Shown: one piece after another, positions 2,685-64,000 of the stretch
Numbering within the stretch: the stretch's first letter is position 1
Layout: every line of letters begins with the position of its first letter
IMG/VR virus record: IMGVR_UViG_3300034117_001582
Location: 124,001-188,000 of that record
DNA length: 64,000 nt
Direction: 5' to 3' (one strand)
The notes under the pieces: model-generated
Told to the model about the DNA's origin: nothing
Databases searched by the model: none
What the model saw: the letters and a program-made list of their open reading frames with translations, nothing else
Position numbers and translations under genes: made by a program

Positions 2685-2722
2685 GTTTTAATATGGTTAT
2701 GATTAATACAAATAGTTTTTAT

Positions 2723-12893: not shown

Positions 12894-12894
12894 A

Positions 12895-14158: not shown

Positions 14159-14408
14159 AATTTTTGATTCAGTATCATATGGACATATGGAACCATTAGT
14201 TCCCTTTACAAAAATTGCGGAATTTAATACACTTAATGAAGTAAGTGATTTTTTATCTAAATCTGATGAATCAATTAAATACTTTATTTGTGATAAAGAG
14301 AATAAAGTTTTATTTGAAAGTACTATGAAAATATTTGAGTCACCAGATAACGGTAAAACCATCTACGAAAGAGGGTATTTACAAAGAAATAAAAAACAAA
14401 TTAAATGA
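14148..14408 (+). CDS. hypothetical protein
   Basis: 86-aa coupled ORF with IFESPDNGKTIY motif. Confidence 0.6.
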   Translation: MIYKIFDSVSYGHMEPLVPFTKIAEFNTLNEVSDFLSKSDESIKYFICDKENKVLFESTMKIFESPDNGKTIYERGYLQRNKKQIK

Positions 14409-15386: not shown

Positions 15387-15827
15387 ATGGATAAAAAAAT
15401 TGTTGGTATAACTTGTAGTACTTTTGACTTACTACACACAGGTCACATCATTATGTTAGAAGAATGTAAAAAACATTGTGATTATTTAATATGCGCATTA
15501 CAAAATGATCCAACAATAGATAGGCCTGAAAAAAATAAACCCGTACAATCTATCGTCGAAAGATATCTTCAATTAGATGCGGTTAAATATGTAGATAAGA
15601 TAATACCTTATAGCACGGAAGAAGAATTACAATCAATATTTGCATCCTTAGATTTGGATGTAAGAATTATTGGGGAAGAATATAAAGACACACAATTCAC
15701 GGCAAAAGACATTTGTCAAAAAAGGGGTATTAAATTGGTGTATAATAAAAGAGATCATGATTTCTCAACATCCAGTTTACGGCAAAGGATTTATAATCAA
15801 GAATCCACTAAACGATTTGTAAAATAA
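15387..15827 (+). CDS. glycerol-3-phosphate cytidylyltransferase-like (HIGH family)
   Basis: FDLLHTGH, R.HDFSTSSLR. Confidence 0.85.
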   Translation: MDKKIVGITCSTFDLLHTGHIIMLEECKKHCDYLICALQNDPTIDRPEKNKPVQSIVERYLQLDAVKYVDKIIPYSTEEELQSIFASLDLDVRIIGEEYKDTQFTAKDICQKRGIKLVYNKRDHDFSTSSLRQRIYNQESTKRFVK

Positions 15828-18563: not shown

Positions 18564-19373
18564 ATGGAAAAAGAAAAATTAGACGTATCGGTAATTTTAC
18601 CGATTAACTCATCAAAACAAAGAGATTTTGATATACTATTTGAAAGGGCCGTTAAATCATTACAAATACAATTAACAGACATTAATGAGTTGGTTATTGT
18701 TCATACAGATGAGGACGGTTTAAAGTCAAGATTAGAGGAATACGATTATAGTGGTATCACTGTTAATTTTATTGAAAATAAAGGTGATTTTGATTTTAGC
18801 TCACAAGTTAATTTAGGTGTTAAAAACGCAAAAAGTAAGTGGGTATCCATTTTAGAATTTGATGATGAATATTCAAGCATATGGTTTAAAAATGTTAATA
18901 GATTTATTAAGGCATATCCTGAAGTGGACGCATTTTTACCATTAGTAGTCGATACAGATGAAAAAGGTATGTTTGTTGGGTTCACAAATGAAGCAACATT
19001 TGCGGCAAGTTTAAATTCAGAAATCGGGTATCTAACAAATGATGTTTTAATGGCTTACCAAAATTTCCAATCAAGTGGTATGGTAATAAAAAAAGAAACA
19101 TATTTAGAAAACGGTGGGTTTAAATCTTCTATGAGATTAACATTTGTTTATGAATTCCTTTTACGATTAACTTACAACTCTGTAAATATTATGACCATTC
19201 CTAGAATTGGTTATAAACATATGAACTTAAGAGAAGGGTCAATTTTTTGGAATTATAAAAATGGTAACGAAAAGATTTCAGACAAAGAAGTTTCATTTTG
19301 GATTGAGTCGGCAAAAAAAGAACATTTCTTCACTTCAGATAGAAATATAAAGTTTGAACCTGAACAAGCTTAA
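18564..19373 (+). CDS. GT2 glycosyltransferase
   Basis: VSVILP, NLGV, ILEFDDE, GGF. Confidence 0.8.
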   Translation: MEKEKLDVSVILPINSSKQRDFDILFERAVKSLQIQLTDINELVIVHTDEDGLKSRLEEYDYSGITVNFIENKGDFDFSSQVNLGVKNAKSKWVSILEFDDEYSSIWFKNVNRFIKAYPEVDAFLPLVVDTDEKGMFVGFTNEATFAASLNSEIGYLTNDVLMAYQNFQSSGMVIKKETYLENGGFKSSMRLTFVYEFLLRLTYNSVNIMTIPRIGYKHMNLREGSIFWNYKNGNEKISDKEVSFWIESAKKEHFFTSDRNIKFEPEQA

Positions 19374-48596: not shown

Positions 48597-49103
48597 ATGC
48601 AAACATTTCTTCCATACTCAGATTTTAGAAAATCTTTAGAATCTCTTGATAACAAACGATTAGGTAAACAACGCGTTGAGGCTTATCAGATAATTTCAGC
48701 AATTACGGGTCGACCAAAAAAGAACGGACAACCTTATAAAGGGTGGATATCTCACCCATGTTCGGTAATGTGGAAAGACTATGTGAATGCGCTTAAACTA
48801 TACTACAACGATTGTATTGATGTGTGGGTGTCTCGTGGTTTTAAAAACACAATGCAACATGAACACATTGAAGGTGAGTTTGTTTTACCTCATTGGTTGG
48901 GTGATGAAGAGTTTCATTCATCACATAGATCTAATCTATTACGTAAGGATTTTGATTATTATACAAAACACGGGTGGTTAGATAACCCTGACGACCCATA
49001 CGTGTGGATGGATAATCAAGGATTGTGGTACAAACAAATTGCTGGTACTAAAGAAAGGATTTATTATAAACCAAATATTATATTAGAATCCGTTGGTTGT
49101 TGA
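48597..49103 (+). CDS. pyrimidine-dimer DNA glycosylase/EndoV-like (MSMEG_6728 family)
   Basis: MQTFLPY..F..S...LD.KRLGKQRVE..QI, HP...MW, SHRSNLLRKD. Confidence 0.85.
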   Translation: MQTFLPYSDFRKSLESLDNKRLGKQRVEAYQIISAITGRPKKNGQPYKGWISHPCSVMWKDYVNALKLYYNDCIDVWVSRGFKNTMQHEHIEGEFVLPHWLGDEEFHSSHRSNLLRKDFDYYTKHGWLDNPDDPYVWMDNQGLWYKQIAGTKERIYYKPNIILESVGC

Positions 49104-49928
49104 ATTATAGAAAACCAATCCTGTTACGTTAGTTGTTTTTGAGATAGTTGGGGTTGAGTAATTAAATGTCATTACATCACCTCCACCCTGTTCTCCAAAT
49201 TGTATTCTGATTGGATAATAAGTCTCCGCGGTTAATGATGCAGTTCCTGACCGTTCTTGATTTGCGTGTAAACCCCCATTTTTTACTGTCGCATTTAAAG
49301 TAGTAAACCCTGTTATCGCAATATCACCGATCCACATATATGAAGCATCATCCGATGACGTAAAGAATGCGTAGGTTTCCGTTGTTGTTGGTTTGAAATA
49401 ACCTAACCATTGACAACTAAAATTAGATCCATCATCTTGGGCTGGTTCAAATATAGAAGTGGTTTGTACTGATGTTGCCGGATTTCCACCTACCGATGCC
49501 GGAGTTGCAGTTGCAAAGAAACTAACGTTATCGGCAAAATATCCAGAGTAGGTTGTTTTAAATACACCAGCAGTATAAGGTAAAACCCAAGAAGTCCAAT
49601 ACCCATTTGTAGTTAAATACGATGAACACTGAGTAGTTCCGGTAAATGTTTGATTAAATACAGAATTAACTAAATTAATAAATGATTGGTCTGTTTTTAA
49701 TTTTGACCTTGAAAATCTAATATAAGCTGGCACATTGTCAGGGTTAGGTTGATTTCCACTAGTGTTTGGTCTACAAATAACATATCCTAAATCTTCATCG
49801 GGACCATTCCACCATCTAGGGTTTCCAGTAAATCCTGATGATGGCGTACCAACGGCCAATGAACCAATTTGTGTTGTTCCTGATATCGTTGAACCTGTGT
49901 TATATGCGAAAGGTCTTGCAGTTGCCAT
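49083..49928 (-). CDS. PA14-domain virion protein
   Basis: FSCQWLGYF.P....Y.F...SDDAS..WI, NGGLH, YPIRIQFGE.GG. Confidence 0.8.
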   Translation of the reverse strand: MATARPFAYNTGSTISGTTQIGSLAVGTPSSGFTGNPRWWNGPDEDLGYVICRPNTSGNQPNPDNVPAYIRFSRSKLKTDQSFINLVNSVFNQTFTGTTQCSSYLTTNGYWTSWVLPYTAGVFKTTYSGYFADNVSFFATATPASVGGNPATSVQTTSIFEPAQDDGSNFSCQWLGYFKPTTTETYAFFTSSDDASYMWIGDIAITGFTTLNATVKNGGLHANQERSGTASLTAETYYPIRIQFGEQGGGDVMTFNYSTPTISKTTNVTGLVFYNSTTNGF

Positions 49929-49957: not shown

Positions 49958-50884
49958 CTAAACTATTTCCAATACCTTATTATAAACGGCAAAGATTGTT
50001 GGGTGACACTCAAATGTTTCTTTTCTTTCTAAACAATTAACAAGTGAAGGTATACCTTGTATTGATTGCCATTCTCTAACTCCGTATTTAATATCTGAAG
50101 CACAATGTAAACCACAACCACCAAGAACATAATGGTATTTATAACCTTGATTATTTTTTCTATATGGTGCTCTAAATTGAGGGTGTATTGAACTTCCAAG
50201 TTGAATAATTTCTGAGTCTGTTGTTCCTGCTAAATGAAGTAATCCTGAATCCATAGTAATGAAACACATTGCACCATTAATTAACCACCATGTTTGAGAT
50301 AAGGTTGTTTGGTTCATTAAATTCAAACCAATATCAATATTAAAATTAAAAACGGGTTTATCCACATTTGAACCACCAAGTTCTGATGAATCTTTTCCAA
50401 CAGAAATAACGGCAATACCTCTTTCATTTAATAGTTTTGTTAACATTTGCCATTTTTTTGCATCCCAAGTTCTTGAATTCCAATTTTGAACAGGGTGAAT
50501 TAAAACATATTTTTCAGGTAATCCTTCAATTGATTCTACCTCATCAGGAAAATAGTCCATTGACATTTCATCTTTGGTCAACATAAAACCTAAATTAACC
50601 GCATGAAATTGTCTAATATCCATTGCATTATGTTTATAACAAACACCGTTTGGGTGATACCCAATATTAAAGGATTGAAATACTTCATAATCATTTTTAA
50701 TGTCGTCTGTAATTTCATTAAAAATATTATCTACATAAGGATTGTTTTTAAAAATTTCTGGTTGGTTTGTTGCTACTGATATTTTTTTACCGTAAGAATT
50801 ATAAAGTTTTCTTAAAGTGGGTGTTACCGCTAAGGTATCACCTAACGCTCTACATCCTAACACATCAACACAAACATCTTTCAT
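49958..50884 (-). CDS. GT9 (heptosyltransferase-like) glycosyltransferase with C-terminal Cys cluster
   Basis: LGDTL..TP, MDSGLLHLAG, CGLHC...C...FEC. Confidence 0.85.
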   Translation of the reverse strand: MKDVCVDVLGCRALGDTLAVTPTLRKLYNSYGKKISVATNQPEIFKNNPYVDNIFNEITDDIKNDYEVFQSFNIGYHPNGVCYKHNAMDIRQFHAVNLGFMLTKDEMSMDYFPDEVESIEGLPEKYVLIHPVQNWNSRTWDAKKWQMLTKLLNERGIAVISVGKDSSELGGSNVDKPVFNFNIDIGLNLMNQTTLSQTWWLINGAMCFITMDSGLLHLAGTTDSEIIQLGSSIHPQFRAPYRKNNQGYKYHYVLGGCGLHCASDIKYGVREWQSIQGIPSLVNCLERKETFECHPTIFAVYNKVLEIV

Positions 50885-50935
50885 TCTATAATAATATGAA
50901 CTTCACAAATAAACTAAATGTTTTATTTTTATGTT

Positions 50936-53900
50936 ATGGAAAAAACTAAAATAGTCCTCATAAGTTCGTATTGTGATACCGAAGAAAAAATTGACGTTCT
51001 AATAAATACCATCAAAACCATTAAGAGTTACAATTTAGATGTAATGGTAAATAGTCCTTTACCTTTACCTTCAGATGTAATAAATATGTGTGATTTTTAT
51101 GTGCAAACAAAAGAAAACCCATTACTTAATTGGCCCGAAAAATCTGTTATGTCTTGGGCAAGATACATTGGAAAGGATAGGGAAATTGTAGTTAAAAGAT
51201 CGGTAATTGATTATGGGTGGGCAGCACTTTACCAAACTAAAAAATTATCTGAATATGCGTTAACATATGACTATGACAGATATTATCATATTATATATGA
51301 TACGGAAATTGATGATACGGTGGTTTCTACTTTTTTATCGGATAAAAAATGTAACTTTTTTCCATTTCACGAACACAAAGTTAGTTTACATTTAATTGCG
51401 TTAGATAGAGAAAACCTATTGAAATTTTCAAATCTAATAACTTTTGATAGTTACCTTAAATTTAATTGTATTGTTGAGAACTGGCTTTACAACACTCTAA
51501 TTAATAGTGATATGAATTATAAAATTGAATTAGAAAAAATTGATGATTTAATATTATTCCATAAAGACGAAAATTTATTTGACTACTCCGACATTAATGG
51601 TTTAGTTTTTTTCATAGTTAAAGATGTTGTAAATAATGATGAGGTTTGTTTATATTTTTACAATAATAAAGAAAAAATAAATGTTTTAATTACCGTAGAT
51701 GGTGTCGAGTCCTCTTATGATATATCCAATAGGGATATCATTAATTTAGGGTTTAAACCATACAATATAAAAAATGTTTTAATATCTTATGATGGAATAT
51801 CATCGGATATAACAGAAAAAATAAAAAATATTATCCACAATGTTATTGAAATTATTATGAATAAATCAAAAATTAAACTATTATATCTTACACCACACCT
51901 ATCAACAGGTGGAATGCCTCAATTTGTATTAAAAAGAATTCAAGAACTCCAAAAATACAAAGACCAAATTGAAATATTTTTGGTTGAGTATTCTCAGTTT
52001 AGTAACACATACGTTGTCCAACGAGATAAAATAATTAATCTATTAGGTGAAGGTCATTTTTTTAGTTTAGGTGATACAACCGATACAAAAAGAAAATATG
52101 AGCTAATTGATATTATTAAAAACAATAATATTGATATTGTTCATTCAGAAGAAATGTTAGAAGGATTTGAAAGTTTTAATAAAATTCCACTACCATTGTT
52201 AAATCAACTTTATTCAAATGATAGGACTTGGAAAATGGTTGAGACTTGTCATAATGTTTGGTTTAACCCACAAACACATAAAAAGTTCAATCCTGAAGCG
52301 TATTGTTTTGTTACCCCTTATCATTTAAAGGAAACGTTTTTAAATGAAACACCAATTAAGTTTTTATCTCTATACCCAATTGAGAATAAGGTAACTAAAA
52401 TTTTAGAGGAGAATGAAATCTATGGTGATTTTAATCAAGTACCACTTATTGAAAAAATTAAAGTAAGAAATGAACTTGGTTTGGATATGTTTAAAACTCA
52501 CGTACTTAATGTTGGGTTATGGACAAGTGGTAAAAATCAAGGTGAAGGTGTTGAGGTTGCAAGAGAATTAATTGACTCAAACCCAGATATTGAATTCCAT
52601 TTTATTGGGAACCAAGCTCCAAACTTTGAGGACTATTGGGGTCCAATAATGAATAATTTACCATCAAACGTAAAAGTATGGGGTGAGCGTAATGACGTTG
52701 AAAAATTCATGGCGGCTTGTGATGTTTTAATGTTTAACTCAACTTGGGAATGTAATCCGTTGGTTGTTAGAGAATCAATCAACTATGGAATGAAAATACT
52801 TGCAAGAGATTTACCACAATACATGGGTATGTTTGATGGATATATAACACCAATAGAAGGTGATGTTAAAAACATATCAAAACAATTGGTTGGACTTATC
52901 AAAAATAAGGACGTTTATAAAATATTACCTGATGATACATTTGGTGAAGATTTATTAAATTTTTATAACGCAGTTACAAATATAAAAATTACCCAAAACA
53001 AACCATTAACCAAAGATTATACTTTTGTTAGACATTATGTTAATCAACCTTATTTTGAGGTACAAGGAACCACAGAAAACAAATTGAACATTAAATATTA
53101 TGATGATAACAATAATGTTAATTATCAGAACGAATTATCAATTAATAGTTGGGTTAAATTAAATAAAGAATACTTTATTAAATGGAGAACAACGGTTGAA
53201 GAAAATGGTGAAATTATTTACGATGAGACTTTAAATTTAAAAGATAAACGAGTATATATTTCTTTTGGATCAAAATCATTAGGAGATACAATGGCTTGGA
53301 TTCCTTATTGTGAGGTATTTAGAAAAAAACATGGTTGTCAACTTATAGTATCAACATTCCTTAATAGTTTGTTTAAAGACCAATATCCTGAGATTGAATT
53401 TGTTGAACCTGGTGATTTGGTAACTAATATACACGCACAATATAGATTAGGTTGGCATTATACAAGTGAAGGGGTTTACGATAATAACAAACACCCATTT
53501 GATTTTAAGAAAATGCCATTACAAAAAACGGCAACTGACATCTTAGGTTTAGATTATGAAGAAGTTAGACCACTATTAAAATTACCTAACACACCTAAAA
53601 AGAAAAAAGTTGGTATTGGGTTTCACTCAACCGCACAATCAAAATATTGGAACAACCCTGACGGATGGCAAGCAGTTGTTGACCACCTTAATACTTTAGG
53701 TTATGAATGTATGATCTACTCTAAAGAAGGTGACGGATACATGAATAACCATTACCCTAAAGGTGTAACCATTTTTAAAGGAGGTAACTTACAAGAAGTA
53801 ATTGACGACCTATCAGAATGTGAGTTCTTTATTGGTCTCGGATCAGGATTATCTTGGTTAGCTTGGGCTTGTAAATTACCTGTCGTTTTGATTTCAGGAT

Positions 53901-55411
53901 TTAGTGAAAAATGGGCGGAAACAACATTAGACACATATAGAGTTATTAATGAAAGTGTTTGTCACGGATGTTTTAACTCAGATAGATTAGATGCCGGTGA
54001 TTGGAATTGGTGTCCACTACATAAGAACACAGATCGGATGTTTGAATGTACAAAAGAAATAAGTTCCGGTATGGTTATTAAAGAAATAAATAAAATAATT
54101 AACAAAGAATCTAATAGTGATTTAGTTACTATTATATTGTCCCACGCAAACACAAAAGAAAAAAGAAAAATTTTAATAGAACATTTAAAAACAATTAATA
54201 CAAAAATACTACTATCAACAAATTACCCAATTGATGATGAAATTAAAGTTTTATGTGATTACGTCATATATGATGAGGATAACCCAATATTATTGAAGGA
54301 GGATTTTAATAAGTATAACGTGTCTTTTTATTTTTATAGTGTCAGAAAAGGGGTTGAGGTAAGGGAATCCTTTGATTATGAACACGGGTACGCTGTTTAT
54401 AAATTAATACAAAACGGATTAACTGAATCAAAAAAATTAGGATTTAAATATTCTCATATTATAAATTACGATTATTTAATAAACAAAAACACATTACAAG
54501 ATAACTATAAATTATTAGAAAATTACGATTCCGTATTTTATAGATATAAAAATAAATCATATACGCAAGACTCATACTGTACTGGATTTTTTACAGGAAA
54601 AATAGATAAGTTAATTAAACCATTTACCCACTATAACACAAAAGACGAATATTATAATTATGACGGGTATAATAAAATATTAGAAATAATAACAAAAGAT
54701 GCGGTAAAAAAACAAAACTTAAAAGTTAAAGAACTTTTTTATGAAGACTTAAAGGAAACATCAATTGTTAATAGAGTAGACGATAACCACAAAAATAACA
54801 AAGAAGTAATGGAAGAAAACGAATTCAAAAAAATAAGTGATTATTATAATTGCGATAAAACATCCACACACACATACCATAACGTCTATTCAAAAATATT
54901 TGAAGGGATAAGAGATGAGGTATTTTCGTTATTAGAAATCGGAATTCATGAGGGAGCATCTTTAAATGTTTGGAGAGACTATTTGAAGAATGCTAATATA
55001 TATGGTTTAGATATCAATAGGGAATTTTCACATGATAGGGGTCATATTTTTAAAGGAGACCAAAATAACTTATTTGATTTAGAAAAAATCACATCAGAAA
55101 TAAAAAGTTGTAAAGTCATAATTGATGATGCTTCCCATAATCCACAACATCAAATTAAAACCTTTAATTATCTTTTTGAGAATTTATTAGAAGATGGTGG
55201 GTACTATATTATTGAAGACGTTGAAACGTCGTATTGGGATCCATTATCTGAATTATATGGGTATGAAATTGGTTATTTAAATGTTGTTGATTATTTTAGT
55301 AAATTAACACATAATGTTAATTACAAATACAATGGATTTAATAATACTTTAAAAATTGAAAGCATTTTATTTACATCAAATTGTATTGTGATAAAAAAAT
55401 TAATGAAATAA
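50936..55411 (+). CDS. multidomain glycosyltransferase: GT-A-like, GT4, TibC/Aah-type O-heptosyltransferase, GT-A-like, methyltransferase
   Basis: PHLSTGGMPQ / ECNPLVVRES (GT4); SLGDTMAW.PY, GLGSGLSWLAWA, ISGFS, YRVIN..CHGC..C..FEC (TibC); LLEIGI, IIDDASH, GGYYIIEDV (MTase). Confidence 0.85.
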   Translation: MEKTKIVLISSYCDTEEKIDVLINTIKTIKSYNLDVMVNSPLPLPSDVINMCDFYVQTKENPLLNWPEKSVMSWARYIGKDREIVVKRSVIDYGWAALYQTKKLSEYALTYDYDRYYHIIYDTEIDDTVVSTFLSDKKCNFFPFHEHKVSLHLIALDRENLLKFSNLITFDSYLKFNCIVENWLYNTLINSDMNYKIELEKIDDLILFHKDENLFDYSDINGLVFFIVKDVVNNDEVCLYFYNNKEKINVLITVDGVESSYDISNRDIINLGFKPYNIKNVLISYDGISSDITEKIKNIIHNVIEIIMNKSKIKLLYLTPHLSTGGMPQFVLKRIQELQKYKDQIEIFLVEYSQFSNTYVVQRDKIINLLGEGHFFSLGDTTDTKRKYELIDIIKNNNIDIVHSEEMLEGFESFNKIPLPLLNQLYSNDRTWKMVETCHNVWFNPQTHKKFNPEAYCFVTPYHLKETFLNETPIKFLSLYPIENKVTKILEENEIYGDFNQVPLIEKIKVRNELGLDMFKTHVLNVGLWTSGKNQGEGVEVARELIDSNPDIEFHFIGNQAPNFEDYWGPIMNNLPSNVKVWGERNDVEKFMAACDVLMFNSTWECNPLVVRESINYGMKILARDLPQYMGMFDGYITPIEGDVKNISKQLVGLIKNKDVYKILPDDTFGEDLLNFYNAVTNIKITQNKPLTKDYTFVRHYVNQPYFEVQGTTENKLNIKYYDDNNNVNYQNELSINSWVKLNKEYFIKWRTTVEENGEIIYDETLNLKDKRVYISFGSKSLGDTMAWIPYCEVFRKKHGCQLIVSTFLNSLFKDQYPEIEFVEPGDLVTNIHAQYRLGWHYTSEGVYDNNKHPFDFKKMPLQKTATDILGLDYEEVRPLLKLPNTPKKKKVGIGFHSTAQSKYWNNPDGWQAVVDHLNTLGYECMIYSKEGDGYMNNHYPKGVTIFKGGNLQEVIDDLSECEFFIGLGSGLSWLAWACKLPVVLISGFSEKWAETTLDTYRVINESVCHGCFNSDRLDAGDWNWCPLHKNTDRMFECTKEISSGMVIKEINKIINKESNSDLVTIILSHANTKEKRKILIEHLKTINTKILLSTNYPIDDEIKVLCDYVIYDEDNPILLKEDFNKYNVSFYFYSVRKGVEVRESFDYEHGYAVYKLIQNGLTESKKLGFKYSHIINYDYLINKNTLQDNYKLLENYDSVFYRYKNKSYTQDSYCTGFFTGKIDKLIKPFTHYNTKDEYYNYDGYNKILEIITKDAVKKQNLKVKELFYEDLKETSIVNRVDDNHKNNKEVMEENEFKKISDYYNCDKTSTHTYHNVYSKIFEGIRDEVFSLLEIGIHEGASLNVWRDYLKNANIYGLDINREFSHDRGHIFKGDQNNLFDLEKITSEIKSCKVIIDDASHNPQHQIKTFNYLFENLLEDGGYYIIEDVETSYWDPLSELYGYEIGYLNVVDYFSKLTHNVNYKYNGFNNTLKIESILFTSNCIVIKKLMK

Positions 55412-55502: not shown

Positions 55503-56018
55503 TTATCCATTAGCGGCCTTTATCCACTCACAAGTTAAAAAATCGGAAGTACTAACAACAGAACCTGCCACAATTAAATATTGATTAACCGTCCAATTTA
55601 TTGATAAAGTAGAAAATCCTGTTGTATAGTTAGCAACACCAATATCATCTCTCGCACCAATAGTTGAATTAATCGCTATTGTTGCATTTCCTGTTCCTGC
55701 GGCAACATTTATTGCCAATCTTCTATATAACTGAGCCGCTCTTGTGGCAGTAGCAACTGATGTATTTGTGGCAACTAAAGTCGCACCAACAAGTGTTGCG
55801 GATGTGTTAACATAAAAATAAAAACTAAATGCGTTGTTAGCCGCACTTTTTGTAACGCAAGTTTCTATTGTAACAATATCATCAGCAACAAATGTGTTCG
55901 CCGGTATTAAAATAGAATGAATTAAAGTTATAGATGTGGAGTTTACACTTCCTGTTTGTGTGGTAGATGTAACTACCGCGTATTTTTTTCCCACATTAAA
56001 TCCGTCTATTTTAGCCAT
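55503..56018 (-). CDS. fibre-associated beta protein, paralog 3
   Basis: MAKIDGFN, IPANTF, INWTV..Y.I.AG. Confidence 0.65.
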   Translation of the reverse strand: MAKIDGFNVGKKYAVVTSTTQTGSVNSTSITLIHSILIPANTFVADDIVTIETCVTKSAANNAFSFYFYVNTSATLVGATLVATNTSVATATRAAQLYRRLAINVAAGTGNATIAINSTIGARDDIGVANYTTGFSTLSINWTVNQYLIVAGSVVSTSDFLTCEWIKAANG

Positions 56019-56529
56019 TTGTAATTCTTATCCATTGACAGTTTATGTTATCGGCTGCGTTGTCAACATCACCCGCCAATATAATATAACTATCTACAGT
56101 CCAATTTATTGCTAAAGAACTTGGGATTGTGGTTAAAGCAGCATTATATATATAATCTTGATTAACATCTACAGTATTCAACAATACATTAGTCCCATTT
56201 CCTGACCCATCTGACACCATAATACTAAGCCTTCTTACAAAAAGTATTGCAGTTATGGTTGCAGTAACTCCTATGTTTTCGGCAATTTGAACCGGAGTTG
56301 TTAAATCGTCAGTATTGTTCCAATATAATCTTACATTTGAAACCGCATTAGTTCCTGTTTTTTTTACAAAAGATTCAAGTTTAACGACATCAAAAGTTTT
56401 AAATGTATTTGCTGGAACAAAAATAGAACCTAACTTAACTTCCGTTAACGAGGATGTAGTTGATTGAGGTGTTGTCAAACTTATTGTCTGAAACGGACTA
56501 TACATGTTGAACCCATTAATTTTTGCCAT
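56011..56529 (-). CDS. fibre-associated beta protein, paralog 2
   Basis: MAKINGFN, VPANTF, YWN.TDDLTTP, INWTVDSYIILAG. Confidence 0.65.
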   Translation of the reverse strand: MAKINGFNMYSPFQTISLTTPQSTTSSLTEVKLGSIFVPANTFKTFDVVKLESFVKKTGTNAVSNVRLYWNNTDDLTTPVQIAENIGVTATITAILFVRRLSIMVSDGSGNGTNVLLNTVDVNQDYIYNAALTTIPSSLAINWTVDSYIILAGDVDNAADNINCQWIRITNG

Positions 56530-56792
56530 TACAAGTCGTATACATAATTTATAAAGTCTTGAGAAACCAAAAATGAAATATTGTCAATAGTTACATCTCT
56601 AACTTTGAAAAAAATAATGTTTCCGTCAAGTTCAATTGAAACGTCTTCATCATTATTTGTAAAATATCCTTTTTGACCATTTTCATCTTCAATTAAAAAT
56701 GTTAAAGTTCTTGGGATATCTAAAAAAGAAGACCCCTCTTCTGAATCAATTTTTTTAACCAACGTGTTTCTTTTTTTTTCTAACTGTATCAT
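56529..56792 (-). CDS. hypothetical protein, possibly fibre chaperone
   Basis: 87 aa between paralogs. Confidence 0.55.
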   Translation of the reverse strand: MIQLEKKRNTLVKKIDSEEGSSFLDIPRTLTFLIEDENGQKGYFTNNDEDVSIELDGNIIFFKVRDVTIDNISFLVSQDFINYVYDL

Positions 56793-56796
56793 ATCT

Positions 56797-57303
56797 TTAA
56801 TTACTTACTTTTAAAAATTCTGTTCTAACACCTGTCCCTGTTCCACAAAATCCGGCCAATATAATGTATGAATCCACTGTCCAATTTAGTGCGACGGTAG
56901 ATAAAGCAAAACTTGCAGCCGTAAAATCAGAATCATGCGCGGTTCCTGTTCCATAAATTTTAGAACCATTTCCTGTCCCATTTGCAACAATTACTGACAA
57001 CCTTCTATTTTGACCATAAAATATACTTGTGTTCAAAAGACTTCTTACGGTTAATTGTATTGGTGTTGTTAAATCGTCAGTTTCATTCCAATATAAAGTT
57101 GTTGAATAATTTCCTGACGTTAAACCTGTTAATTTGGTTTGCCATTCTATATGTAAAATATCACCAGCAGCAAAAGTATTTGCAGGAACATAAACAGATG
57201 TAATTTTAGTTGTTGACGCCGCATTAACATAATTACTTGGTGTGCCATTAGTTGAAACAACTTGTTTATTATTATAAAAATCAAATCCGTTAAATTTACT
57301 CAT
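56797..57303 (-). CDS. fibre-associated beta protein, paralog 1
   Basis: MSKFNGFD, VPANTF, YWNETDDLTTP, LNWTVDSYIILAG. Confidence 0.65.
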   Translation of the reverse strand: MSKFNGFDFYNNKQVVSTNGTPSNYVNAASTTKITSVYVPANTFAAGDILHIEWQTKLTGLTSGNYSTTLYWNETDDLTTPIQLTVRSLLNTSIFYGQNRRLSVIVANGTGNGSKIYGTGTAHDSDFTAASFALSTVALNWTVDSYIILAGFCGTGTGVRTEFLKVSN

Positions 57304-57307
57304 ATAA

Positions 57308-60300
57308 TTAAATTTCTACCCAACTATTATCAGGATTAAAATAAATTGTTTCATTAGTCCCATCCAAACTATAACCAATTATTCTTATTATATCACCACT
57401 TCCTGAAGGTGCCGTTGTTGTTATACCTCCTGCGGTTGTTGAAACATATAAAATATCACCTGTGGTTGTTGTGAATCCTGAATTTCTAATATATCCGTTT
57501 ATTAACATACCACTCGTCGTTCCCGTACCTAACGCAAATGCTAACATTCCTGTGGAGCCTGATGCAAAATCCGCATCTGCCGCAACCCAAGCCCCTGAAC
57601 TATTATAGTAATATAGATTACCCGCAGTTAATGACCCCGTACCAAAAGTCACAATATCACCATAACCTGAAACTGAAGATGTTAATCCTGTTACGGGGTT
57701 ATGTATGAATTGGTAATCACCTCTAACATCTATTTTTCTTGATGGAGATGCGGTACCAATACCAACATTTGTTCCATCATCAAAAATAGTACTTGTGCTT
57801 GATAATGTTGATGTTGTTTGCCATTTAACGGCATAATTGGCTGTTCCTGATCCTACAAAAGAAGTTCCAGAAGTACCGTTAGTTCCGCTTGTACCATTTG
57901 TACCGTTGGTTCCTGATGTTCCATTCGTACCATTTGTACCTGACGTGCCATTTGTTCCTGAAGTTCCATTGGTTCCCGATGTTCCGTTTAATCCATTGTA
58001 AACCCACGATATTGTATAGGTCTGAGCCGAAAAAGAACCATTTCCAACAACATTGGTTAAATCAAATTGGTATACAGATCCCGAAACTGAAATACCGTTT
58101 ACAGCCCAAATACCAATAATATTATTACTACCAACTTTAGTCACTTGTAAATAAACAGTATTTCCTGATGATTGTATTGAATCAATTGCCGAAAACCAAG
58201 CCGAGTAATTAACACTGTTAATGTCGGTGGTATTAATGTAAATAATGGTTGTTGCTGATATTGTTGCGGAATCACTATTAAACTTTGTTTCGATAGGGCC
58301 ACCACCTAGTTTCCAGAAATCCCATCTACCTGAGTTTGACCCGTCATTACCATAAATCCCACTAGTTCCGTTAGTTCCATTCGTACCACTTGTTCCTCTT
58401 GTGCCTGAAGTGCCGTTGGTCCCTGAAGACCCATTAGTTCCTGATGTACCATTAGTTCCTGAAGTACCATTAGTTCCTGATGTACCATTAGTTCCTGAAG
58501 TACCATTAGTACCATTTAGTCCATTAAAGACCCACGAAACAGTATACGTAGCCTGATCGGTTAAAGCCCCTGAACCAGTGACAAAACTAAGCCCTATATC
58601 CCAATATGTGGTATTATCCGTCATACCTGTTATATCATAGATTCCAATTACACTATTATTACCTAATTCTGTTATTTGTAGATAACCTTTATTACCCGCC
58701 GATTTTAAAACGGCACAGGCATCAAACCAATCGTAATAATCTATTGTATTAATATCTACAACATTAATAGAAATATATGAAATTGTTGATATTATTTGTG
58801 TGTCAGGAACAAAGTATGTCGAAACAGGACTTCCAGGTACAGTTCCTTCATTATACCATCTTCCACTATTTGAACCATCATTACCCACTTTTCCAGTATT
58901 TCCATTATTTCCTGAAGTTCCATCAGTTCCTGAAGTTCCATCAGTTCCTGAAGTTCCTGCCTGTGCCATTAATGCCCAATTACCACTAAATGGAGGAGTT
59001 GGTATCCCCGTATTACCATTTATTAATGAAATATAAGAACTACCGGCAAATTGAACGACATCATTTATATTGTAAGTGGACATTAAGTTCCATGAACCTT
59101 GCCAATTAAATGAAATGCCACTAGTTCCGTTAGTACCTGATGTTCCGTTAGTACCTGATGTTCCATTTGTTCCATTAGTACCGTTAGTTCCTGAAGTACC
59201 ATTAGTCCCCGAAGTTCCATTTGTACCATTAGTACCATTAGTACCTGAGGTTCCATTTGTACCATTAGTACCTGAAGTTCCATTCGTTCCGCTTGTACCA
59301 TTAGTTCCATTCGTTCCGCTTGTACCATTAGTTCCATTCGTTCCAGATGTTCCTGAAGTTCCATTTGTCCCACTTGATCCATTAGTTCCATTCGTACCTG
59401 AAGTTCCATTTGTACCCGAAGTTCCATTTGTACCATTTGTTCCCGAAGTCCCGTTTGTTCCTGATGTTCCGTTTGTACCATTCGTTCCTGAAGTACCTGA
59501 TGTTCCATTGGTCCCTGAAGTTCCGTTTGTACCAGAAGTCCCATTTGTACCGTTCATTCCTGAAGTCCCATTAGTACCATTGGTTCCTGAAGTACCATTT
59601 GTTCCGCTAGTGCCATTTGTCCCTGAGGTACCATTCGTTCCACTAGTTCCGTTTGTCCCGTTCGTTCCACTTGTTCCGTTAGTTCCAGATGTCCCATTTG
59701 TTCCGTTAGTTCCACTAGTGCCGTTGGTACCATTTGTACCATTAGTTCCTGAAGTCCCATTAGTACCGCTAGTTCCATTTGTACCATTTGTTCCTGATGT
59801 TCCATTTGTGCCGTTAGTTCCGCTCGTACCATTTGTCCCACTTGTACCGTTGGTACCATTCGTTCCTGAAGTTCCATTTGTTCCGCTAGTCCCGTTTGTT
59901 CCCGATGTTCCATTTGTACCGTTAGTTCCTGAAGTACCATTTGTTCCGCTCGTACCATTAGTCCCTGAAGTACCGTTGGTTCCATTTGTGCCGTTTGTCC
60001 CTGAAGTCCCGTTAGTACCGTTCGTTCCCGAAGTTCCATTTGTTCCATTAGTTCCTGATGTGCCGTTTGTTCCTGAAGTTCCATTAGTCCCTGATGTTCC
60101 ATTAGTACCGTTAGTTCCGTTAGTACCAGATGTTCCATTCGTTCCTGAGGTTCCATTTGTTCCATTAGTACCATTCGTTCCTGAAGTTCCATTAGTACCA
60201 TTCGTACCGCTAGTGCCATTTGTGCCGCTAGTTCCATTAGTCCCCGACGTACCATTTGTTCCATTGGTACCTGATGTTCCATTGGTACCGCTAGTTCCAT

Positions 60301-63300
60301 TCGTGCCGTTTGTTCCCGACGTTCCATTAGTACCGTTCGTCCCTGAAGTTCCGTTTGTACCATTCGTTCCTGAAGTTCCGTTGGTACCTGAAGTTCCATT
60401 CGTACCGTTGGTACCACTTGAACCATTTGTTCCCGAAGTTCCATTAGTCCCGTTAGTCCCATTAGTACCTGAAGTTCCGTTTGTACCTGAAGTTCCGTTT
60501 GTACCATTAGTACCCGATGTTCCATTTGTTCCTGAAGTTCCATTTGTACCTGAAGTCCCGTTAGTACCTGAGGTTCCATTGGTGCCTGATGTTCCGTTAG
60601 TACCTGAAGTCCCATTTGTTCCATTTGTACCTGAGGTGCCGTTTGTTCCTGAAGTCCCGTTTGTTCCGTTAGTTCCACTTGTACCATTCGTACCTGAAGT
60701 CCCATTAGTTCCTGAAGTTCCGTTTGTACCATTAGTACCTGATGTACCATTAGTTCCTGAAGTTCCGTTTGTACCACTAGTACCTGATGTACCATTAGTT
60801 CCAGATGTTCCGTTCGTACCATTTGTACCTGATGTTCCGTTAGTACCTGACGTACCATTAGTACCTGAAGTTCCGTTTGTACCTGATGTACCATCAGTCC
60901 CATCAACACCAGAAAGTCCACTAGATCCATTCGTACCATTCGTTCCAGATGTGCCATTTGTACCCGAAGTTCCATTTGTACCATTTGTTCCCGAAGTCCC
61001 GTTTGTTCCTGAAGTTCCGTTGGTACCATTAGTCCCGTTTGTTCCCGATGTACCATTTGTGCCGCTAGTACCGTTTGTTCCATTTGTGCCGCTAGTACCA
61101 TTCGTACCGTTGGTTCCATTTGTCCCTGATGTACCATTTGCTCCACTTGTACCATTTGTACCTGAAGTTCCATTTGTTCCATTTGTGCCTGACGTTCCGT
61201 TTGTACCGTTTGTCCCCGAAGTTCCATTTGCTCCGCTAGTTCCATTAGTCCCGTTGGTACCACTTGAACCATTTGTACCTGAAGTTCCATTTGTTCCGTT
61301 AGTCCCTGATGTGCCATTTGTTCCCGAAGTTCCATTAGTACCGTTGGTTCCATTCGTCCCATTTGTTCCTGATGTTCCATTTGTTCCGTTTGTACCTGAA
61401 GTACCATTTGTACCTGAAGTTCCATTTGTACCTGAAGTTCCGGCAGATGTTAATAAATTTGTACCGACACCCGCAGCACATGCGGTTATGTCAAGAAACG
61501 CACCTCTTGCAGTACCACCTTGTTCAAAAAACCTAATTCTATCTTGCCATATGTCAAAAGTGACCCCTGTACCTGAAATGGTAGTGTTAGTTACAGGTTT
61601 GTTTAATAGGATTTCCCCACCTTCATCACCAGCCTGATACAATACACTTAATTTTGTACCATCAAATGTTAAAAGAGATTCGGCAACTATTCCTCCTGAT
61701 CCGTTTGACGTTAAAACTTGATTATCTGAACCTGGTACTGCAGGTGATGATCCACTTGTTCCGTTTGTTCCGCTCGTACCATTAGTGCCTGAAGTTCCAT
61801 TTGTTCCGTTTGTACCTGAAGTTCCATTAGTTCCTGACGATCCATTTGTACCATTTGTTCCTGAAGTTCCGTTGGTCCCGCTCGTACCATTTGTACCATT
61901 TGTACCTGAAGTTCCATTAGTTCCGTTAGTTCCGCTAGTACCATTAGTACCGCTAGTACCATTCGTACCTGATGTTCCGTTTGTCCCATTTGTTCCCGAA
62001 GTTCCATTTGTACCTGAAGTCCCGTTCGTACCATTTGTTCCTGATGTTCCATTAGTCCCTGATGTTCCGTTTGTTCCATTAGTCCCTGAAGTTCCATTCG
62101 TTCCATTAGTTCCGCTAGTCCCATTTGTACCTGAAGTCCCGTTGGTTCCATTAGTACCATTCGTCCCTGAAGTGCCATTTGTGCCGCTAGATCCATTAGT
62201 CCCAGAAGTTCCGCTAGTACCGTTAGTGCCTGAAGTACCATCTGTACCTGATGTTCCCGCAATAAATGGTGATAATGAAGTGGTTACCTGAGCAATTGTT
62301 GCATCTTCAAAATAACAAGTCATTGTTTTTGCACCTAATGAGGTTGCATAGAACTTAACGACTATTCTATCACTAATATTTACCGTTGTTGCGGGTACAG
62401 GTACAGAAAATAAATAAAGCTCCACAAGCGTACCGTCGCTAATGGGGTGGGGTGCCGCACTATTTGATCCAATTAAAGTTTCAGTACCACCTGTTGTTCT
62501 AATATATATATCAGCATATAATTTTGGAGTACCACCATTGGAGCTCATACTAACGTAATTCTCAAAGTTCCAGTTTCCTGCGGGTATTGTGGTTATTCCT
62601 GGATCACCAATAATTGTTGAAAATGAACCTATTAGTTGTGTTCCAGCACCTGTTGCCGTTAATGTTGTTCCGGCACCTATCACTATGTTTCTATCCATTA
62701 CATAGTAAGTTGGAATTGTAGATGCGGATGAAGGGTTAAAATAATAAACTAAACCTGTTGAAAATCCATTCACCCCTGAAGTTCCATTAGTACCGCTGGT
62801 TCCGTTCGTTCCATTTGTACCTGATGTTCCATTGGTCCCTGATGTTCCATTCGTCCCGTTTGTTCCCGATGTACCATTCGTTCCGTTAGTACCTGAGGTT
62901 CCATTCGTTCCGCTAGTTCCATTTGTTCCTGAAGTCCCATTTGTACCATTTGTTCCGTTTGTTCCACTAGTCCCATCTGTTCCGTTAGTCCCCGATGTTC
63001 CGTTGGTTCCATTAGTCCCGCTAGTACCATTGGTACCTGATGTTCCTGAAGTTCCATTTGTACCTGACGTTCCATTTGCACCATTTGTTCCCGAAGTCCC
63101 ATTTGTACCATTAGTCCCATTTGTACCATTAGTTCCTGATGTTCCATTAGTCCCCGATGTGCCATTTGTTCCATTAGTTCCTGATGTACCATTAGTACCG
63201 TTAGTTCCTGAAGTCCCGTTAGTTCCTGAAGTCCCGTTTGTGCCATTTGTTCCTGACGTTCCGTTAGTTCCACTTGTACCATTGGTACCTGATGTTCCGT

Positions 63301-64000
63301 TAGTTCCATTAGTACCATTAGTACCATTAGTTCCTGAAGTACCATTTGTACCTGATGTACCATTCGTACCATTTGTTCCACTAGTACCATTTGTTCCCGA
63401 AGTTCCATTAGTTCCATTCGTACCTGAAGTACCTGATGTTCCATTGGTCCCTGAAGTTCCGTTTGTACCAGAAGTCCCTGAAGTACCATTTGTACCGTTA
63501 GTTCCACTTGTACCATTTGTTCCGTTAGTGCCCGATGTTCCATTAGTACCTGAAGTACCGTTTGTTCCGTTAGTTCCTGAGGTACCATTCGTTCCCGAAG
63601 TTCCATTTGTACCATTGGTTCCGCTAGTTCCGTTTGTTCCATTAGTACCTGAAGTTCCATTAGTTCCTGACGTACCATTTGTACCGTTTGTTCCCGAAGT
63701 ACCGTTTGTTCCCGAAGTACCATTTGTTCCTGATGTTCCATTAACCCCCGATATGCCACTTGTACCATTTGTTCCTGATGTTCCATTTGTACCATTTGTT
63801 CCGCTAGTACCATTCGTACCTGAAGTTCCGTTCGTTCCATTTGTACCTGAAGTGCCGTTTGTTCCATTAGTTCCTGATGTCCCATTTGTACCATTCGTTC
63901 CATTTGCTCCGCTAGTACCATTTGTACCCGAAGTTCCATCAGTACCATTAGTTCCGTTAGCACCTGAAGTACCATTTGTTCCGCTAGTACCATCCGTTCC
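57308..64000 (-). CDS. giant collagen-like (Gly-Thr-Asn/Gly-Thr-Ser) fibre protein, 5'-truncated (>2200 aa)
   Basis: the frame of the 1821-aa ORF stays open upstream of the GTG at 62773 (...GTSGVNGF) with GTN/GTS repeats to the window edge; interspersed globular domains; NVGIGT.SP fibre motif. Confidence 0.85.
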   Translation of the reverse strand, partial: GTDGTSGTNGTSGANGTNGTDGTSGTNGTSGANGTNGTNGTSGTNGTNGTSGTNGTNGTSGTNGTSGTNGTNGTSGTNGTSGISGVNGTSGTNGTSGTNGTSGTNGTNGTSGTNGTSGTNGTNGTSGTNGTNGTSGTNGTSGTNGTNGTSGTNGTSGTNGTNGTSGTNGTNGTSGTSGTNGTSGTNGTSGTSGTNGTNGTSGTNGTSGTNGTNGTSGTNGTSGTNGTNGTNGTNGTSGTNGTSGTNGTSGTNGTNGTSGTNGTSGTNGTNGTSGTNGTNGTSGTNGTSGTNGTNGTNGTNGTSGTNGANGTSGTNGTSGTSGTNGTSGTNGTNGTSGTNGTDGTSGTNGTNGTNGTSGTNGTSGTNGTSGTNGTNGTSGTNGTNGTSGTNGTSGTNGTNGTSGTNGTSGVNGFSTGLVYYFNPSSASTIPTYYVMDRNIVIGAGTTLTATGAGTQLIGSFSTIIGDPGITTIPAGNWNFENYVSMSSNGGTPKLYADIYIRTTGGTETLIGSNSAAPHPISDGTLVELYLFSVPVPATTVNISDRIVVKFYATSLGAKTMTCYFEDATIAQVTTSLSPFIAGTSGTDGTSGTNGTSGTSGTNGSSGTNGTSGTNGTNGTNGTSGTNGTSGTNGTNGTSGTNGTNGTSGTNGTSGTNGTNGTSGTNGTSGTNGTNGTSGTNGTSGTNGTSGTNGTNGTSGTNGTNGTSGTNGTSGTNGTNGSSGTNGTSGTNGTNGTSGTNGTSGTNGTSGSSPAVPGSDNQVLTSNGSGGIVAESLLTFDGTKLSVLYQAGDEGGEILLNKPVTNTTISGTGVTFDIWQDRIRFFEQGGTARGAFLDITACAAGVGTNLLTSAGTSGTNGTSGTNGTSGTNGTNGTSGTNGTNGTNGTNGTSGTNGTSGTNGTNGTSGTNGSSGTNGTNGTSGANGTSGTNGTNGTSGTNGTNGTSGTNGTSGANGTSGTNGTNGTNGTSGTNGTNGTSGTNGTSGTNGTNGTNGTSGTNGTSGTNGTNGTSGTNGTSGTNGTNGSSGLSGVDGTDGTSGTNGTSGTNGTSGTNGTSGTNGTNGTSGTNGTSGTSGTNGTSGTNGTSGTNGTNGTSGTNGTSGTNGTSGTNGTNGTSGTNGTSGTNGTNGTSGTNGTSGTNGTSGTNGTSGTNGTSGTNGTSGTNGTNGTSGTNGTSGTNGTNGTNGTSGTNGSSGTNGTNGTSGTNGTSGTNGTNGTSGTNGTNGTSGTNGTNGTSGTNGTSGTNGTNGTSGTNGTSGTNGTSGTNGTNGTSGTNGTNGTNGTSGTNGTSGTNGTNGTNGTSGTNGTSGTNGTSGTNGTNGTSGTNGTNGTSGTNGTNGTNGTSGTNGTSGTNGTSGTNGTNGTSGTNGTSGTNGTSGTNGTNGTSGTNGTSGTNGTNGTSGTNGTNGTSGTNGTSGTNGTNGTNGTSGTNGTNGTSGTNGTSGTNGTNGTSGTNGTSGTNGTSGTNGTSGTNGTNGTSGMNGTNGTSGTNGTSGTNGTSGTSGTNGTNGTSGTNGTSGTNGTNGTSGTNGTSGTNGTNGSSGTNGTSGTSGTNGTNGTSGTNGTNGTSGTNGTSGTNGTNGTSGTNGTNGTNGTSGTNGTSGTNGTNGTNGTSGTNGTSGTNGTSGISFNWQGSWNLMSTYNINDVVQFAGSSYISLINGNTGIPTPPFSGNWALMAQAGTSGTDGTSGTDGTSGNNGNTGKVGNDGSNSGRWYNEGTVPGSPVSTYFVPDTQIISTISYISINVVDINTIDYYDWFDACAVLKSAGNKGYLQITELGNNSVIGIYDITGMTDNTTYWDIGLSFVTGSGALTDQATYTVSWVFNGLNGTNGTSGTNGTSGTNGTSGTNGTSGTNGSSGTNGTSGTRGTSGTNGTNGTSGIYGNDGSNSGRWDFWKLGGGPIETKFNSDSATISATTIIYINTTDINSVNYSAWFSAIDSIQSSGNTVYLQVTKVGSNNIIGIWAVNGISVSGSVYQFDLTNVVGNGSFSAQTYTISWVYNGLNGTSGTNGTSGTNGTSGTNGTNGTSGTNGTNGTSGTNGTSGTSFVGSGTANYAVKWQTTSTLSSTSTIFDDGTNVGIGTASPSRKIDVRGDYQFIHNPVTGLTSSVSGYGDIVTFGTGSLTAGNLYYYNSSGAWVAADADFASGSTGMLAFALGTGTTSGMLINGYIRNSGFTTTTGDILYVSTTAGGITTTAPSGSGDIIRIIGYSLDGTNETIYFNPDNSWVEI
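59120..61440 (-). repeat. main block of 9-bp degenerate GTN/GTS repeats (others at ~57870-57990, 58360-58520, 61755-62258, 62775-64000)
   Basis: period-9 pattern of GTWCC-containing units with synonymous variation. Confidence 0.95.

Follow-up and report, generated by a model that had tools for sequence, protein, structure and literature searches.

A proline-free collagen-like fibre gene of a T4-like jumbo phage and its pairing with a TibC-type glycosyltransferase gene

The fibre gene and its Gly-X-Y repeat

Here, we analyzed a 64,000-nucleotide (nt) stretch of viral DNA (hereafter the window), which corresponds to positions 124001-188000 of the 291,867-bp IMG/VR virus record IMGVR_UViG_3300034117_001582 (99% complete by CheckV), with emphasis on P0002, a gene for a long collagen-like fibre, and on the multidomain glycosyltransferase gene P0302 that lies convergent with it. 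The genome encodes a Gp23-type major capsid protein, a T4-type portal and T4-type large terminase, a tail sheath protein of 1,069 amino acids (aa) and a family B DNA polymerase, as well as gp25-like and gp6-like baseplate genes at genome positions 79.6-81.9 kb (~100 kb from the fibre gene), and was thus assigned to a T4-like jumbo myophage. Within the window, P0002 occupies positions 57308-64000 of the minus strand as a single open frame of 2,230 residues with one terminal stop. As the initial annotation had suspected, the open reading frame track understates this gene: the frame runs past position 64000 to an ATG at genome position 190067, and the complete gene (genome 181308-190067, or L009:309-9068, minus strand) encodes 2,919 aa. 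The following features were distinguished in the window:

57308..64000, minus strand: fibre gene P0002, in-window part of the translation (residues 690-2919 plus stop)
62759..64000, minus strand: collagen-like run 1 (residues 87-1103), 339 uninterrupted triplets, the C-terminal 138 of which are in the window
62258..62758, minus strand: module NC2 (residues 1104-1270), 93% identical to a module of the relative L057
61745..62257, minus strand: collagen-like run 2, 57 triplets
61442..61744, minus strand: module NC3 (residues 1442-1542), with a post-collagen motif at its start
59111..61441, minus strand: collagen-like run 3, 259 uninterrupted triplets
58958..59110, minus strand: module NC4 (residues 2320-2370), with matches to PHROG tail-fibre families
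57995..58867, minus strand: paralogous modules NC5 (58523-58867) and NC6 (57995-58333), ~115 aa each
58334-58522, minus strand: 21-triplet run between NC5 and NC6
57311..57859, minus strand: C-terminal tip domain (residues 2737-2919), which recurs in other fibres with or without a collagen shaft

Across the whole protein, 701 Gly-X-Y triplets form six runs (339, 57, 259, 10, 21 and 15 triplets), and seven non-repeat modules are present in frame (86, 167, 101, 51, 115, 113 and 183 aa); 500 of the triplets are encoded in the window, where the longest run is that of 259. It had been noted before that Gly occupies strictly every third position, with Thr at X, Asn or Ser at Y, no Pro and almost no charge, and the complete gene bears this out. 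Gly is present in 701/701 triplets, the X position is Thr in 642/701 (92%), and the Y position is Asn in 390/701 (56%), Ser in 286/701 (41%) and Asp in 20. Pro is absent from all triplets, no additional Gly is found in X or Y, and only 22 of the 1,402 X/Y residues (about 2%) are charged. The Pfam Collagen family (PF01391) matches the repeat with E = 1.5e-18. With regard to the Y pattern, Ser rarely adjoins Ser (249 of 266 Ser runs are single) and Asn occurs in runs of one or two; the relative L089 differs in being nearly pure GSS. P0002 has 392 N-X-S/T sequons, 372 of which are NGT.

The codon usage of the array reveals selection at the protein level. The first and second codon positions of Gly have an entropy of 0 bits and those of the X residue 0.44 and 0.23 bits, respectively, whereas third codon positions of the repeat carry 1.63-1.71 bits. 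Chance can be ruled out as the origin of the Gly pattern, because Gly is invariant in all triplets and yet its third codon position shows an entropy of 1.68 bits. The longest exact DNA repeat within the gene is 84 nt, 95% of its 31-mers are unique, and all of its 99-mers are unique within the genome. The array is not an artefact of assembly, since its 99-mers are unique and its third positions nearly random while Gly and Thr are fixed. Thus, P0002 carries an old array that has been kept by protein-level selection, unlike the product of recent slippage or of a collapsed assembly.

The initial annotation had named stop codons or frameshifts in read data as the sign of an assembly artefact; short-read contigs bear out the local sequence. 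Contig pieces from four lake-water runs are identical to the P0002 gene wherever they align, but none of them spans the arrays; short-read contigs break inside such arrays, so the exact number of triplets rests on the original assembly. In independently assembled relatives, we found arrays of 421, 666, 677, 832 and 881 triplets with similar DNA degeneracy, and P0002 is not the longest among them, as L078 has at least 861 uninterrupted triplets. One metatranscriptome run yielded low-depth pieces with 95-98% identity, which cover the small genes downstream of P0002 and the 3' end of the fibre gene. These pieces come from a related strain, and DNA carry-over is possible, hence they are no proof of transcription.

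The composition of the repeat is far from that of the collagens described so far. In viral collagens, Thr and Pro account for 3.1% and 22% of X residues (PMC3368898), compared with 92% and 0% in P0002, which agrees with the earlier remark that the repeat departs from the usual Pro- or charge-based collagens. Gram-positive collagens do have 48% Thr, in the Y position (PMC3368898, PMC8968730). We used the 339-triplet run as the query of a profile-free search against 1.84 billion representative proteins and obtained 47,406 collagen-like matches. The best 150 of these 47,406 matches reached at most 499 triplets in one protein and 337 in a single run; in none of them did Thr exceed 80% of X, and 17 combined a lack of Pro with low charge. 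Long proteins were also searched by sequence words, which retrieved many Thr/Ser-type phage proteins. Pro-free arrays of this type are common in metagenomic phage proteins, and the sequence type is therefore not unique to P0002. These results place P0002 at the compositional extreme of an existing but unstudied class.

A TibC-type enzyme beside the fibre gene

The neighbouring enzyme and the gene that adjoins it comprise the following features:

50918..55411, plus strand: P0302, a 1,497-aa multidomain glycosyltransferase, convergent with the fibre module
51857..52957, plus strand: GT1-type (GT-B) domain of P0302 (residues ~314-680)
53090..54097, plus strand: TibC/Aah-type protein O-heptosyltransferase (BAHT) domain of P0302 (residues 725-1060)
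54932..55222, plus strand: Methyltransf_24-like stretch near the C-terminus of P0302 (weak, 21.3 bits, below the cut-off)
49958..50884, minus strand: GT9 heptosyltransferase-like gene (308 aa)

Pfam recognized GT1 and GT9 domains in P0302. Against the NCBIfam model TIGR04414 ('autotransporter strand-loop-strand O-heptosyltransferase'), the protein scored 291.6 bits (291.1 in the genome scan; cut-off 200), and its residues 725-1060 matched residues 87-386 of TibC (PDB 4RAP) with E = 7e-67. P0302 keeps the equivalents of TibC Asp110 and of Cys339, Cys342, Cys358 and Cys370 (SLGDTMAW; CHGC...WCP...FEC), which are the catalytic Asp and the iron finger of that enzyme (PMC4358343), and all five are invariant in the aligned phage homologues. 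Judged by its equivalog score, P0302 contains a domain of the TibC/Aah family, whose members act in the cytoplasm and hyperglycosylate long repetitive adhesins on Ser (PMC4358343). The gene neighbourhood suggests that its substrate is P0002. Two further parts of the arrangement recur in relatives: the 308-aa GT9 gene adjoins the multidomain enzyme also in L025 and L026, and a separate gene of the Methyltransf_24 family adjoins the homologous enzyme in L045.

This domain and Thr/Ser-type collagen-like genes are found together in many phages and some bacteria. Proteins scoring above the TIGR04414 cut-off lie beside such genes in the close relatives L025, L026 and L028, and also in two loci with differently built fibres: L045, whose fibre carries Peptidase_S74 at its end and whose enzyme is a convergent fusion, and L049, where the GT1 and TibC-type parts are encoded separately, in the same direction as the fibre gene and directly after it. 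In a reciprocal search of viral sequences with the enzyme, we found at least 579 homologous stretches and analyzed the best 80 loci, counting as neighbours those genes within 10 kb that encode 15 triplets or more. A collagen-like neighbour was present at 45 of these 80 loci and was of the Thr/Ser/Asn type in 41 of the 45, although many of the co-occurring loci are related, so that the counts overstate the number of independent events. Among the viral loci with at least 60% identity and at least 5 kb on each side, 20 of 21 had a Thr/Ser/Asn-type gene within 10 kb. No Thr/Ser-type collagen-like gene was found at 16 other viral loci (205 kb), and P0002 is the sole gene of this kind in its own 292-kb genome.

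The same association was observed in cellular genomes. Of 64 bacterial and archaeal enzyme loci, 13 have a collagen-like neighbour, and all 13 neighbours are Thr/Ser-type and Pro-poor. Small lipoprotein-like genes with (GTS/GSS)n repeats flank the enzyme in a complete Arenicellales chromosome, in Methylomicrobium and in other gammaproteobacterial genomes (L165:8441-12526; L140:11106-11816; L151, L147, L153, L164 and L194), and most of these gammaproteobacterial proteins have an acidic tail, for example of poly-Asp. When mapped onto a tree of 94 informative enzymes, the pairing trait requires 8 changes, compared with a mean of 27.8 when the labels are shuffled. None of the 15 members of a Negativicutes clade has a collagen-like neighbour, whereas 59 of the 79 members of the other clade, including deep bacterial branches, have one. 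Although relatedness inflates the counts, the compared loci indicate that neither fusion, fission and inversion of the genes nor their transfer between phages and bacteria has broken the pairing. Separately, a phage enzyme subclade ~54% identical to P0302 (L098-L113, L119-L120) has no collagen-like gene within 10 kb.

The initial annotation had raised the possibility that the repeat needs glycosylation, and the conserved neighbouring TibC-type protein glycosyltransferase lends this idea circumstantial support. The complete relative G003, whose fibre is collagen-free, has no TibC-type enzyme. GT2 genes do occur in collagen-free relatives such as G003, and the general presence of glycosyltransferases does not discriminate. 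We found no paper describing a link between TibC-type enzymes and collagen-like fibres among those that could be searched.

Probable fold, proposed glycosylation and likely attachment of the fibre

Two folds have to be considered for a repeat so rich in Gly. The initial annotation had proposed a polyproline-II (PPII)/polyglycine-II bundle, as in springtail antifreeze proteins. According to a survey of PPII bundles, a Gly content of one third goes with the collagen triple helix and one of about two thirds with two-layer bundles such as springtail antifreeze; the bundles are made of short helices joined by turns, and more neighbours per helix need more Gly (10.1101/2023.11.25.568672). Because such bundles also occur in phage fibre tips (10.1101/2023.11.25.568672), and because P0002 is Gly-rich with Thr at a fixed position and comes from a lake that may freeze, an antiparallel bundle resembling the springtail protein or the S16 gp38 tip, with flat Thr arrays binding ice or glycans, deserves mention. 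However, it demands more than one third Gly and regular turns, whereas the Gly share of the P0002 repeat is exactly one third and neither X nor Y contains any, runs of 339 and 259 triplets proceed without a break, and the autocorrelation of Y residues in these two runs is essentially flat beyond a lag of ~2 triplets. We thus regard the bundle as very improbable. On the other hand, a collagen triple helix calls for long, unbroken stretches with Gly in each third position, as seen in P0002, and the exact one-third Gly together with the lack of turn periodicity favours that fold.

As the Gly periodicity is invariant under selection and phage fibres are generally trimeric, we infer that the P0002 repeats form a collagen-type triple helix of three chains. 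With the collagen rise of 0.286 nm per residue, the shaft would be ~600 nm long in total and its longest segment ~290 nm. There is precedent for collagen-like behaviour of sequences of this kind: the circular dichroism (CD) spectrum of the Pro-free and uncharged (GAS)19 was read by its authors as a triple helix, possibly plus random coil (PMC7682875), and Burkholderia Bucl3 contains 38-63 GTS/GSS triplets (PMC4565658).

The density of Ser and Thr beside a hyperglycosylating enzyme also resembles mucin domains, and the short (GTS/GSS)n stretches in the small lipoproteins next to the bacterial enzymes could be flexible linkers. The repeat might then be a monomeric, densely glycosylated extended chain, a 'bottle-brush' spacer between the globular modules. 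Such a spacer has no need of Gly at exactly every third residue, yet Gly is invariant over 701 triplets with saturated synonymous sites and the register is kept in relatives' runs of up to 861 triplets. Given also that trimers are the rule among phage fibres, we consider a mucin-like chain improbable.

Taken together, it appears rather probable that P0002 is a glycosylated, collagen-like virion fibre of a T4-like jumbo myophage, modified by the neighbouring enzyme. In this model, the infected cell would produce the chains, and the TibC-type domain would glycosylate their Ser and/or Thr in the cytoplasm before assembly, with outward-facing Thr, Ser and perhaps Asn side chains as the sites; the glycans may then be lengthened or altered by the GT1, GT9 and methyltransferase activities. 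Globular modules could then nucleate trimerisation, followed by mounting on the virion. The glycans might take over the stabilising and hydrating role that Pro/hydroxyproline (Hyp) or charge pairs have in other collagens, stiffen the helix and shield the 0.6-micrometre fibre from proteases. The seven globular modules would interrupt or cap the shaft, and an exchangeable C-terminal tip would contact the host.

Several observations weigh against this model. Thr at X and Asn or Ser at Y are reportedly among the weaker triple-helix formers on the Persikov host-guest scale, so that an unmodified P0002 helix might be marginal. Neither GmhA nor an HldE heptose kinase was found in the genome, implying either that the donor sugar would come from the host or that the sugar would not be heptose. 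The substrates known for TibC are autotransporters with a beta-helix fold and thus differ from collagen-like chains (PMC4358343). Two Thr/Ser-type fibres, L044 and L047, have no glycosyltransferase in their surveyed DNA, and the paired viral loci are, as mentioned above, in many cases related. In addition, the fibre gene is located outside the tail/baseplate module, and its position gives no indication of tail attachment.

Part of this evidence would fit a fibre that is not glycosylated at all. The helix of such a collagen-like tail fibre would be held together by its length, by flanking trimeric modules, by hydrogen bonds of side chains and water and by cold lake temperatures, and the neighbouring glycosyltransferases would act on something else, for example host surface glycans or another virion protein. 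We rate this explanation as unlikely. The CD spectrum of (GAS)19 was read as a triple helix in a peptide without Pro, charge or sugar (PMC7682875), the separate 26-kb glycosylation island of the genome (see below) could serve other targets, GT2 genes persist in a relative that lacks the collagen fibre (G003), and no glycosyltransferase lies near the fibres of L044 and L047. Two observations speak against this explanation: the TibC-type enzyme goes along with Thr/Ser-type collagen-like genes of differing fibre architecture and gene order, in phages as well as on bacterial chromosomes, and the complete collagen-free relative lacks the enzyme.

The glycosylated fibre could belong to a broader class. 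We tentatively suggest, as a possibility that may well prove wrong, that Gly-X-Y proteins restricted to Thr, Ser and Asn are a widespread and so far undescribed class of 'glyco-collagens' decorated on their outward-facing hydroxyl residues by a dedicated TibC-type subfamily, in which sugars stabilise the helix in place of Pro/Hyp or charge pairs, and which would comprise fibres of aquatic jumbo phages, 0.3 to more than 0.7 micrometres long, as well as short glycosylated lipoproteins of Gammaproteobacteria and other bacteria. As a different route to a modified repeat, we considered that a GT41 (HMW1C-like) enzyme might N-glycosylate the 372 NGT sequons, but rejected this, as the genome has no GT41 match.

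With regard to the globular modules, a PHROG search with NC4 matched phrog_5073 (E = 1e-8) as well as phrog_9851 and phrog_26419, all tail-fibre families. PHROG and Pfam searches with the other globular modules of P0002 and with the upstream neighbours gave mostly no matches, and a sequence search of solved structures returned entries that match only by Gly periodicity (animal collagens and one 'spindle/axial fibril' entry) and none for the globular modules. Homologues of the N-terminal domain start other, collagen-free phage proteins, only one of which has a tail-fibre PHROG match. The 183-aa tip recurs at the ends of other long phage proteins, mostly without a collagen repeat, and is presumed to be the receptor-binding end. 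It was also detected in the viral contigs L025-L029, two of which have Gly-Thr/Ser-Ser/Asn shafts (421 triplets in L026 and 196 in L028); tip identity is 67-79% in L025, L026 and L068. NC3 is 100% identical in L057, and its post-collagen motif, PAVPG...VLTS.G.GGI.AES.LTFDG, is common to L026, L028, L056 and L057. L056 shares NC4 with 100% identity but has an unrelated tip. Such mosaicism among relatives is typical of receptor-binding fibres.

The place of attachment is a separate question, and a head, neck or whisker decoration, forming a long hairy coat like that of some jumbo phages and giant viruses, for adhesion to particles or polysaccharide and not for specific receptor binding, would be compatible with any of the structural readings above. 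Some 20 kb separate the fibre gene from the head module and some 100 kb from the baseplate genes, and a PA14/GLEYA lectin-like gene is nearby. However, NC4 matches tail-fibre PHROGs, mosaic tips are those expected of receptor-binding fibres, and the Thr/Ser-type fibres of relatives adjoin sheath and baseplate genes (L049); hence we find a head or neck location distinctly unlikely. Since the P0002 gene lies outside the baseplate operon but relatives' fibres are next to sheath and baseplate genes, we describe P0002 as a virion fibre of modular build that most likely belongs to the tail. The PA14/GLEYA gene (281 aa, window 49083-49928, minus strand) is two genes from P0302.

Four small genes follow the fibre gene:

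56797-57303, minus strand: 168-aa gene
56529-56792, minus strand: 87-aa gene
56011-56529, minus strand: 172-aa gene
55503-56018, minus strand: 171-aa gene

The three proteins of ~170 aa are paralogues with 33-37% mutual identity, and the four-gene cassette is kept in order in L026 (65-77% identity). The fold predicted for one of the paralogues is a beta-sandwich (mean predicted local distance difference test score, pLDDT, 69) with weak matches to TNF-like lectins and galectins (template modelling score, TM, 0.35-0.48). These small proteins could be fibre-end adaptors or assembly factors.

Known systems and other genes of the phage

A phage collagen-like fibre is in itself an already known kind of protein; what is new here is the extreme length, the composition and the conserved link to a protein glycosyltransferase. 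As in EPclA and EPclB of an E. coli O157 prophage (PMC3368898) and orf28 of the cyanophage P-SSM2 (PMC1079782), the Gly-X-Y shaft of P0002 lies between globular ends; EPclA was shown to be trimeric (PMC3368898), and a role as side or tail fibre has been proposed for this group. These proteins have ~48% Pro at X, are rich in charge and measure tens of nm, whereas P0002 has no Pro, ~2% charged residues, a predicted length of ~600 nm and a dedicated glycosyltransferase next door.

Other collagen-like surface proteins share some of these features. BclA of the Bacillus anthracis exosporium is built of GPT triplets (Pro at X, Thr at Y), is far shorter and has a C1q-like head and rhamnose-based glycans, and its glycosyltransferases are not known to be of the TibC type. 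Like P0002, it is a Thr-rich, collagen-like surface filament of a dormant particle, and it is glycosylated in its collagen-like region, as summarised in PMC8968730. Burkholderia Bucl3 (PMC4565658) and the (GAS)n of Bucl8 (PMC7682875) resemble P0002 in their Pro-free, uncharged triplets of small polar residues, but are 10-20x shorter, belong to the bacterial surface or are associated with efflux, and have no reported glycosylation. Springtail antifreeze proteins and S16 gp38 are likewise Gly-rich, in their case in PPII conformation (10.1101/2023.11.25.568672), but they are compact monomeric domains with Gly well above one third and short helices joined by turns.

With respect to the enzyme, P0302 resembles TibC and Aah, whose substrates are TibA, AIDA-I and Ag43 (PMC4358343), in its equivalog score and in the conserved Asp and iron finger. 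It differs from them in being encoded by a phage, in its fusion to GT1 and other domains and in its putative substrate, a collagen-like repeat. Mimivirus fibrils offer another parallel, in that a virus encodes both a collagen-like surface fibre and glycosylating enzymes (cited in PMC8968730), although mimivirus is a eukaryotic giant virus that relies on Lys/hydroxylysine chemistry. A phage analogue of the latter is the control locus L051 (L051:3168-12422). Its collagen-like fibre, P0057, is rich in Lys (41% of Y) and ends in Peptidase_S74, and two genes downstream of it there is, in place of a TibC-type enzyme, a Glyco_transf_25 plus GT_PLOD protein of 610 aa; GT25/PLOD-type enzymes glycosylate collagen hydroxylysine in animals and mimivirus.

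So far, the stability of collagens has been explained by hydroxyproline in animals and by Pro or charge pairs in bacteria and phages, and P0002 has none of these. Its gene is tightly coupled to an enzyme family known so far only from autotransporter adhesins. If this coupling is functional, it would provide a new substrate class for the TibC-type enzymes, and a new way of stabilising the triple helix that is relevant to the design of recombinant collagens without a hydroxylase. It would also mean phage-encoded glycosylation of a virion fibre, with a bearing on host recognition, protease resistance and adhesion in lakes.

Beyond the fibre locus, a co-directional block of glycan genes was observed at window positions 1-26232 (plus strand), with dUTPase and PhoH genes interspersed. 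It includes the following genes:

2693-3937, plus strand: GT1-like gene
5270-6733, 8073-8795 and 18564-19373, plus strand: GT2-type genes
11632-12486, plus strand: GT10 alpha-1,3-fucosyltransferase
12483-12893, plus strand: WbuC cupin
12874-13539, plus strand: FkbM methyltransferase
13544-14158, plus strand: DegT-like fragment
14405-15385, plus strand: GDP-mannose 4,6-dehydratase
15387-15827, plus strand: small nucleotidyltransferase

The fibre, other virion proteins and the host surface are all candidate targets of this block. The 146-aa nucleotidyltransferase scored 68.9 bits for rfaE_dom_II (cut-off 181.5) versus 66.1 bits for glycerol-3-phosphate cytidylyltransferase, both below the cut-offs, and its assignment is ambiguous; on these matches, it could supply the donor sugar for the heptosyltransferase.

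The metagenomic runs that contain the phage sequence are from lake water and cover several years. An 819-aa protein (L018:7755-10214, genome 202755-205214, minus strand) carries a CHU_C sorting domain of the type IX secretion system (T9SS), a PKD-like domain and an SprB repeat. The presence of the CHU_C domain together with SprB/PKD repeats in a phage protein points to Bacteroidota, and the host is probably a member of this phylum. The same domain content suggests that the protein is a phage product exported through the host T9SS.

The window further encodes a ClpB-like double AAA+ chaperone of 681 aa (41090-43135, plus strand). Elsewhere in the genome, three large genes (2,431, 2,148 and 1,621 aa; genome 90039-104087 and 74698-79563, in L016 and L014) have no Pfam match, and similarly large genes (4,235/2,122 aa and 4,020/1,621 aa) precede the Thr/Ser-type fibres in L045 and L046.

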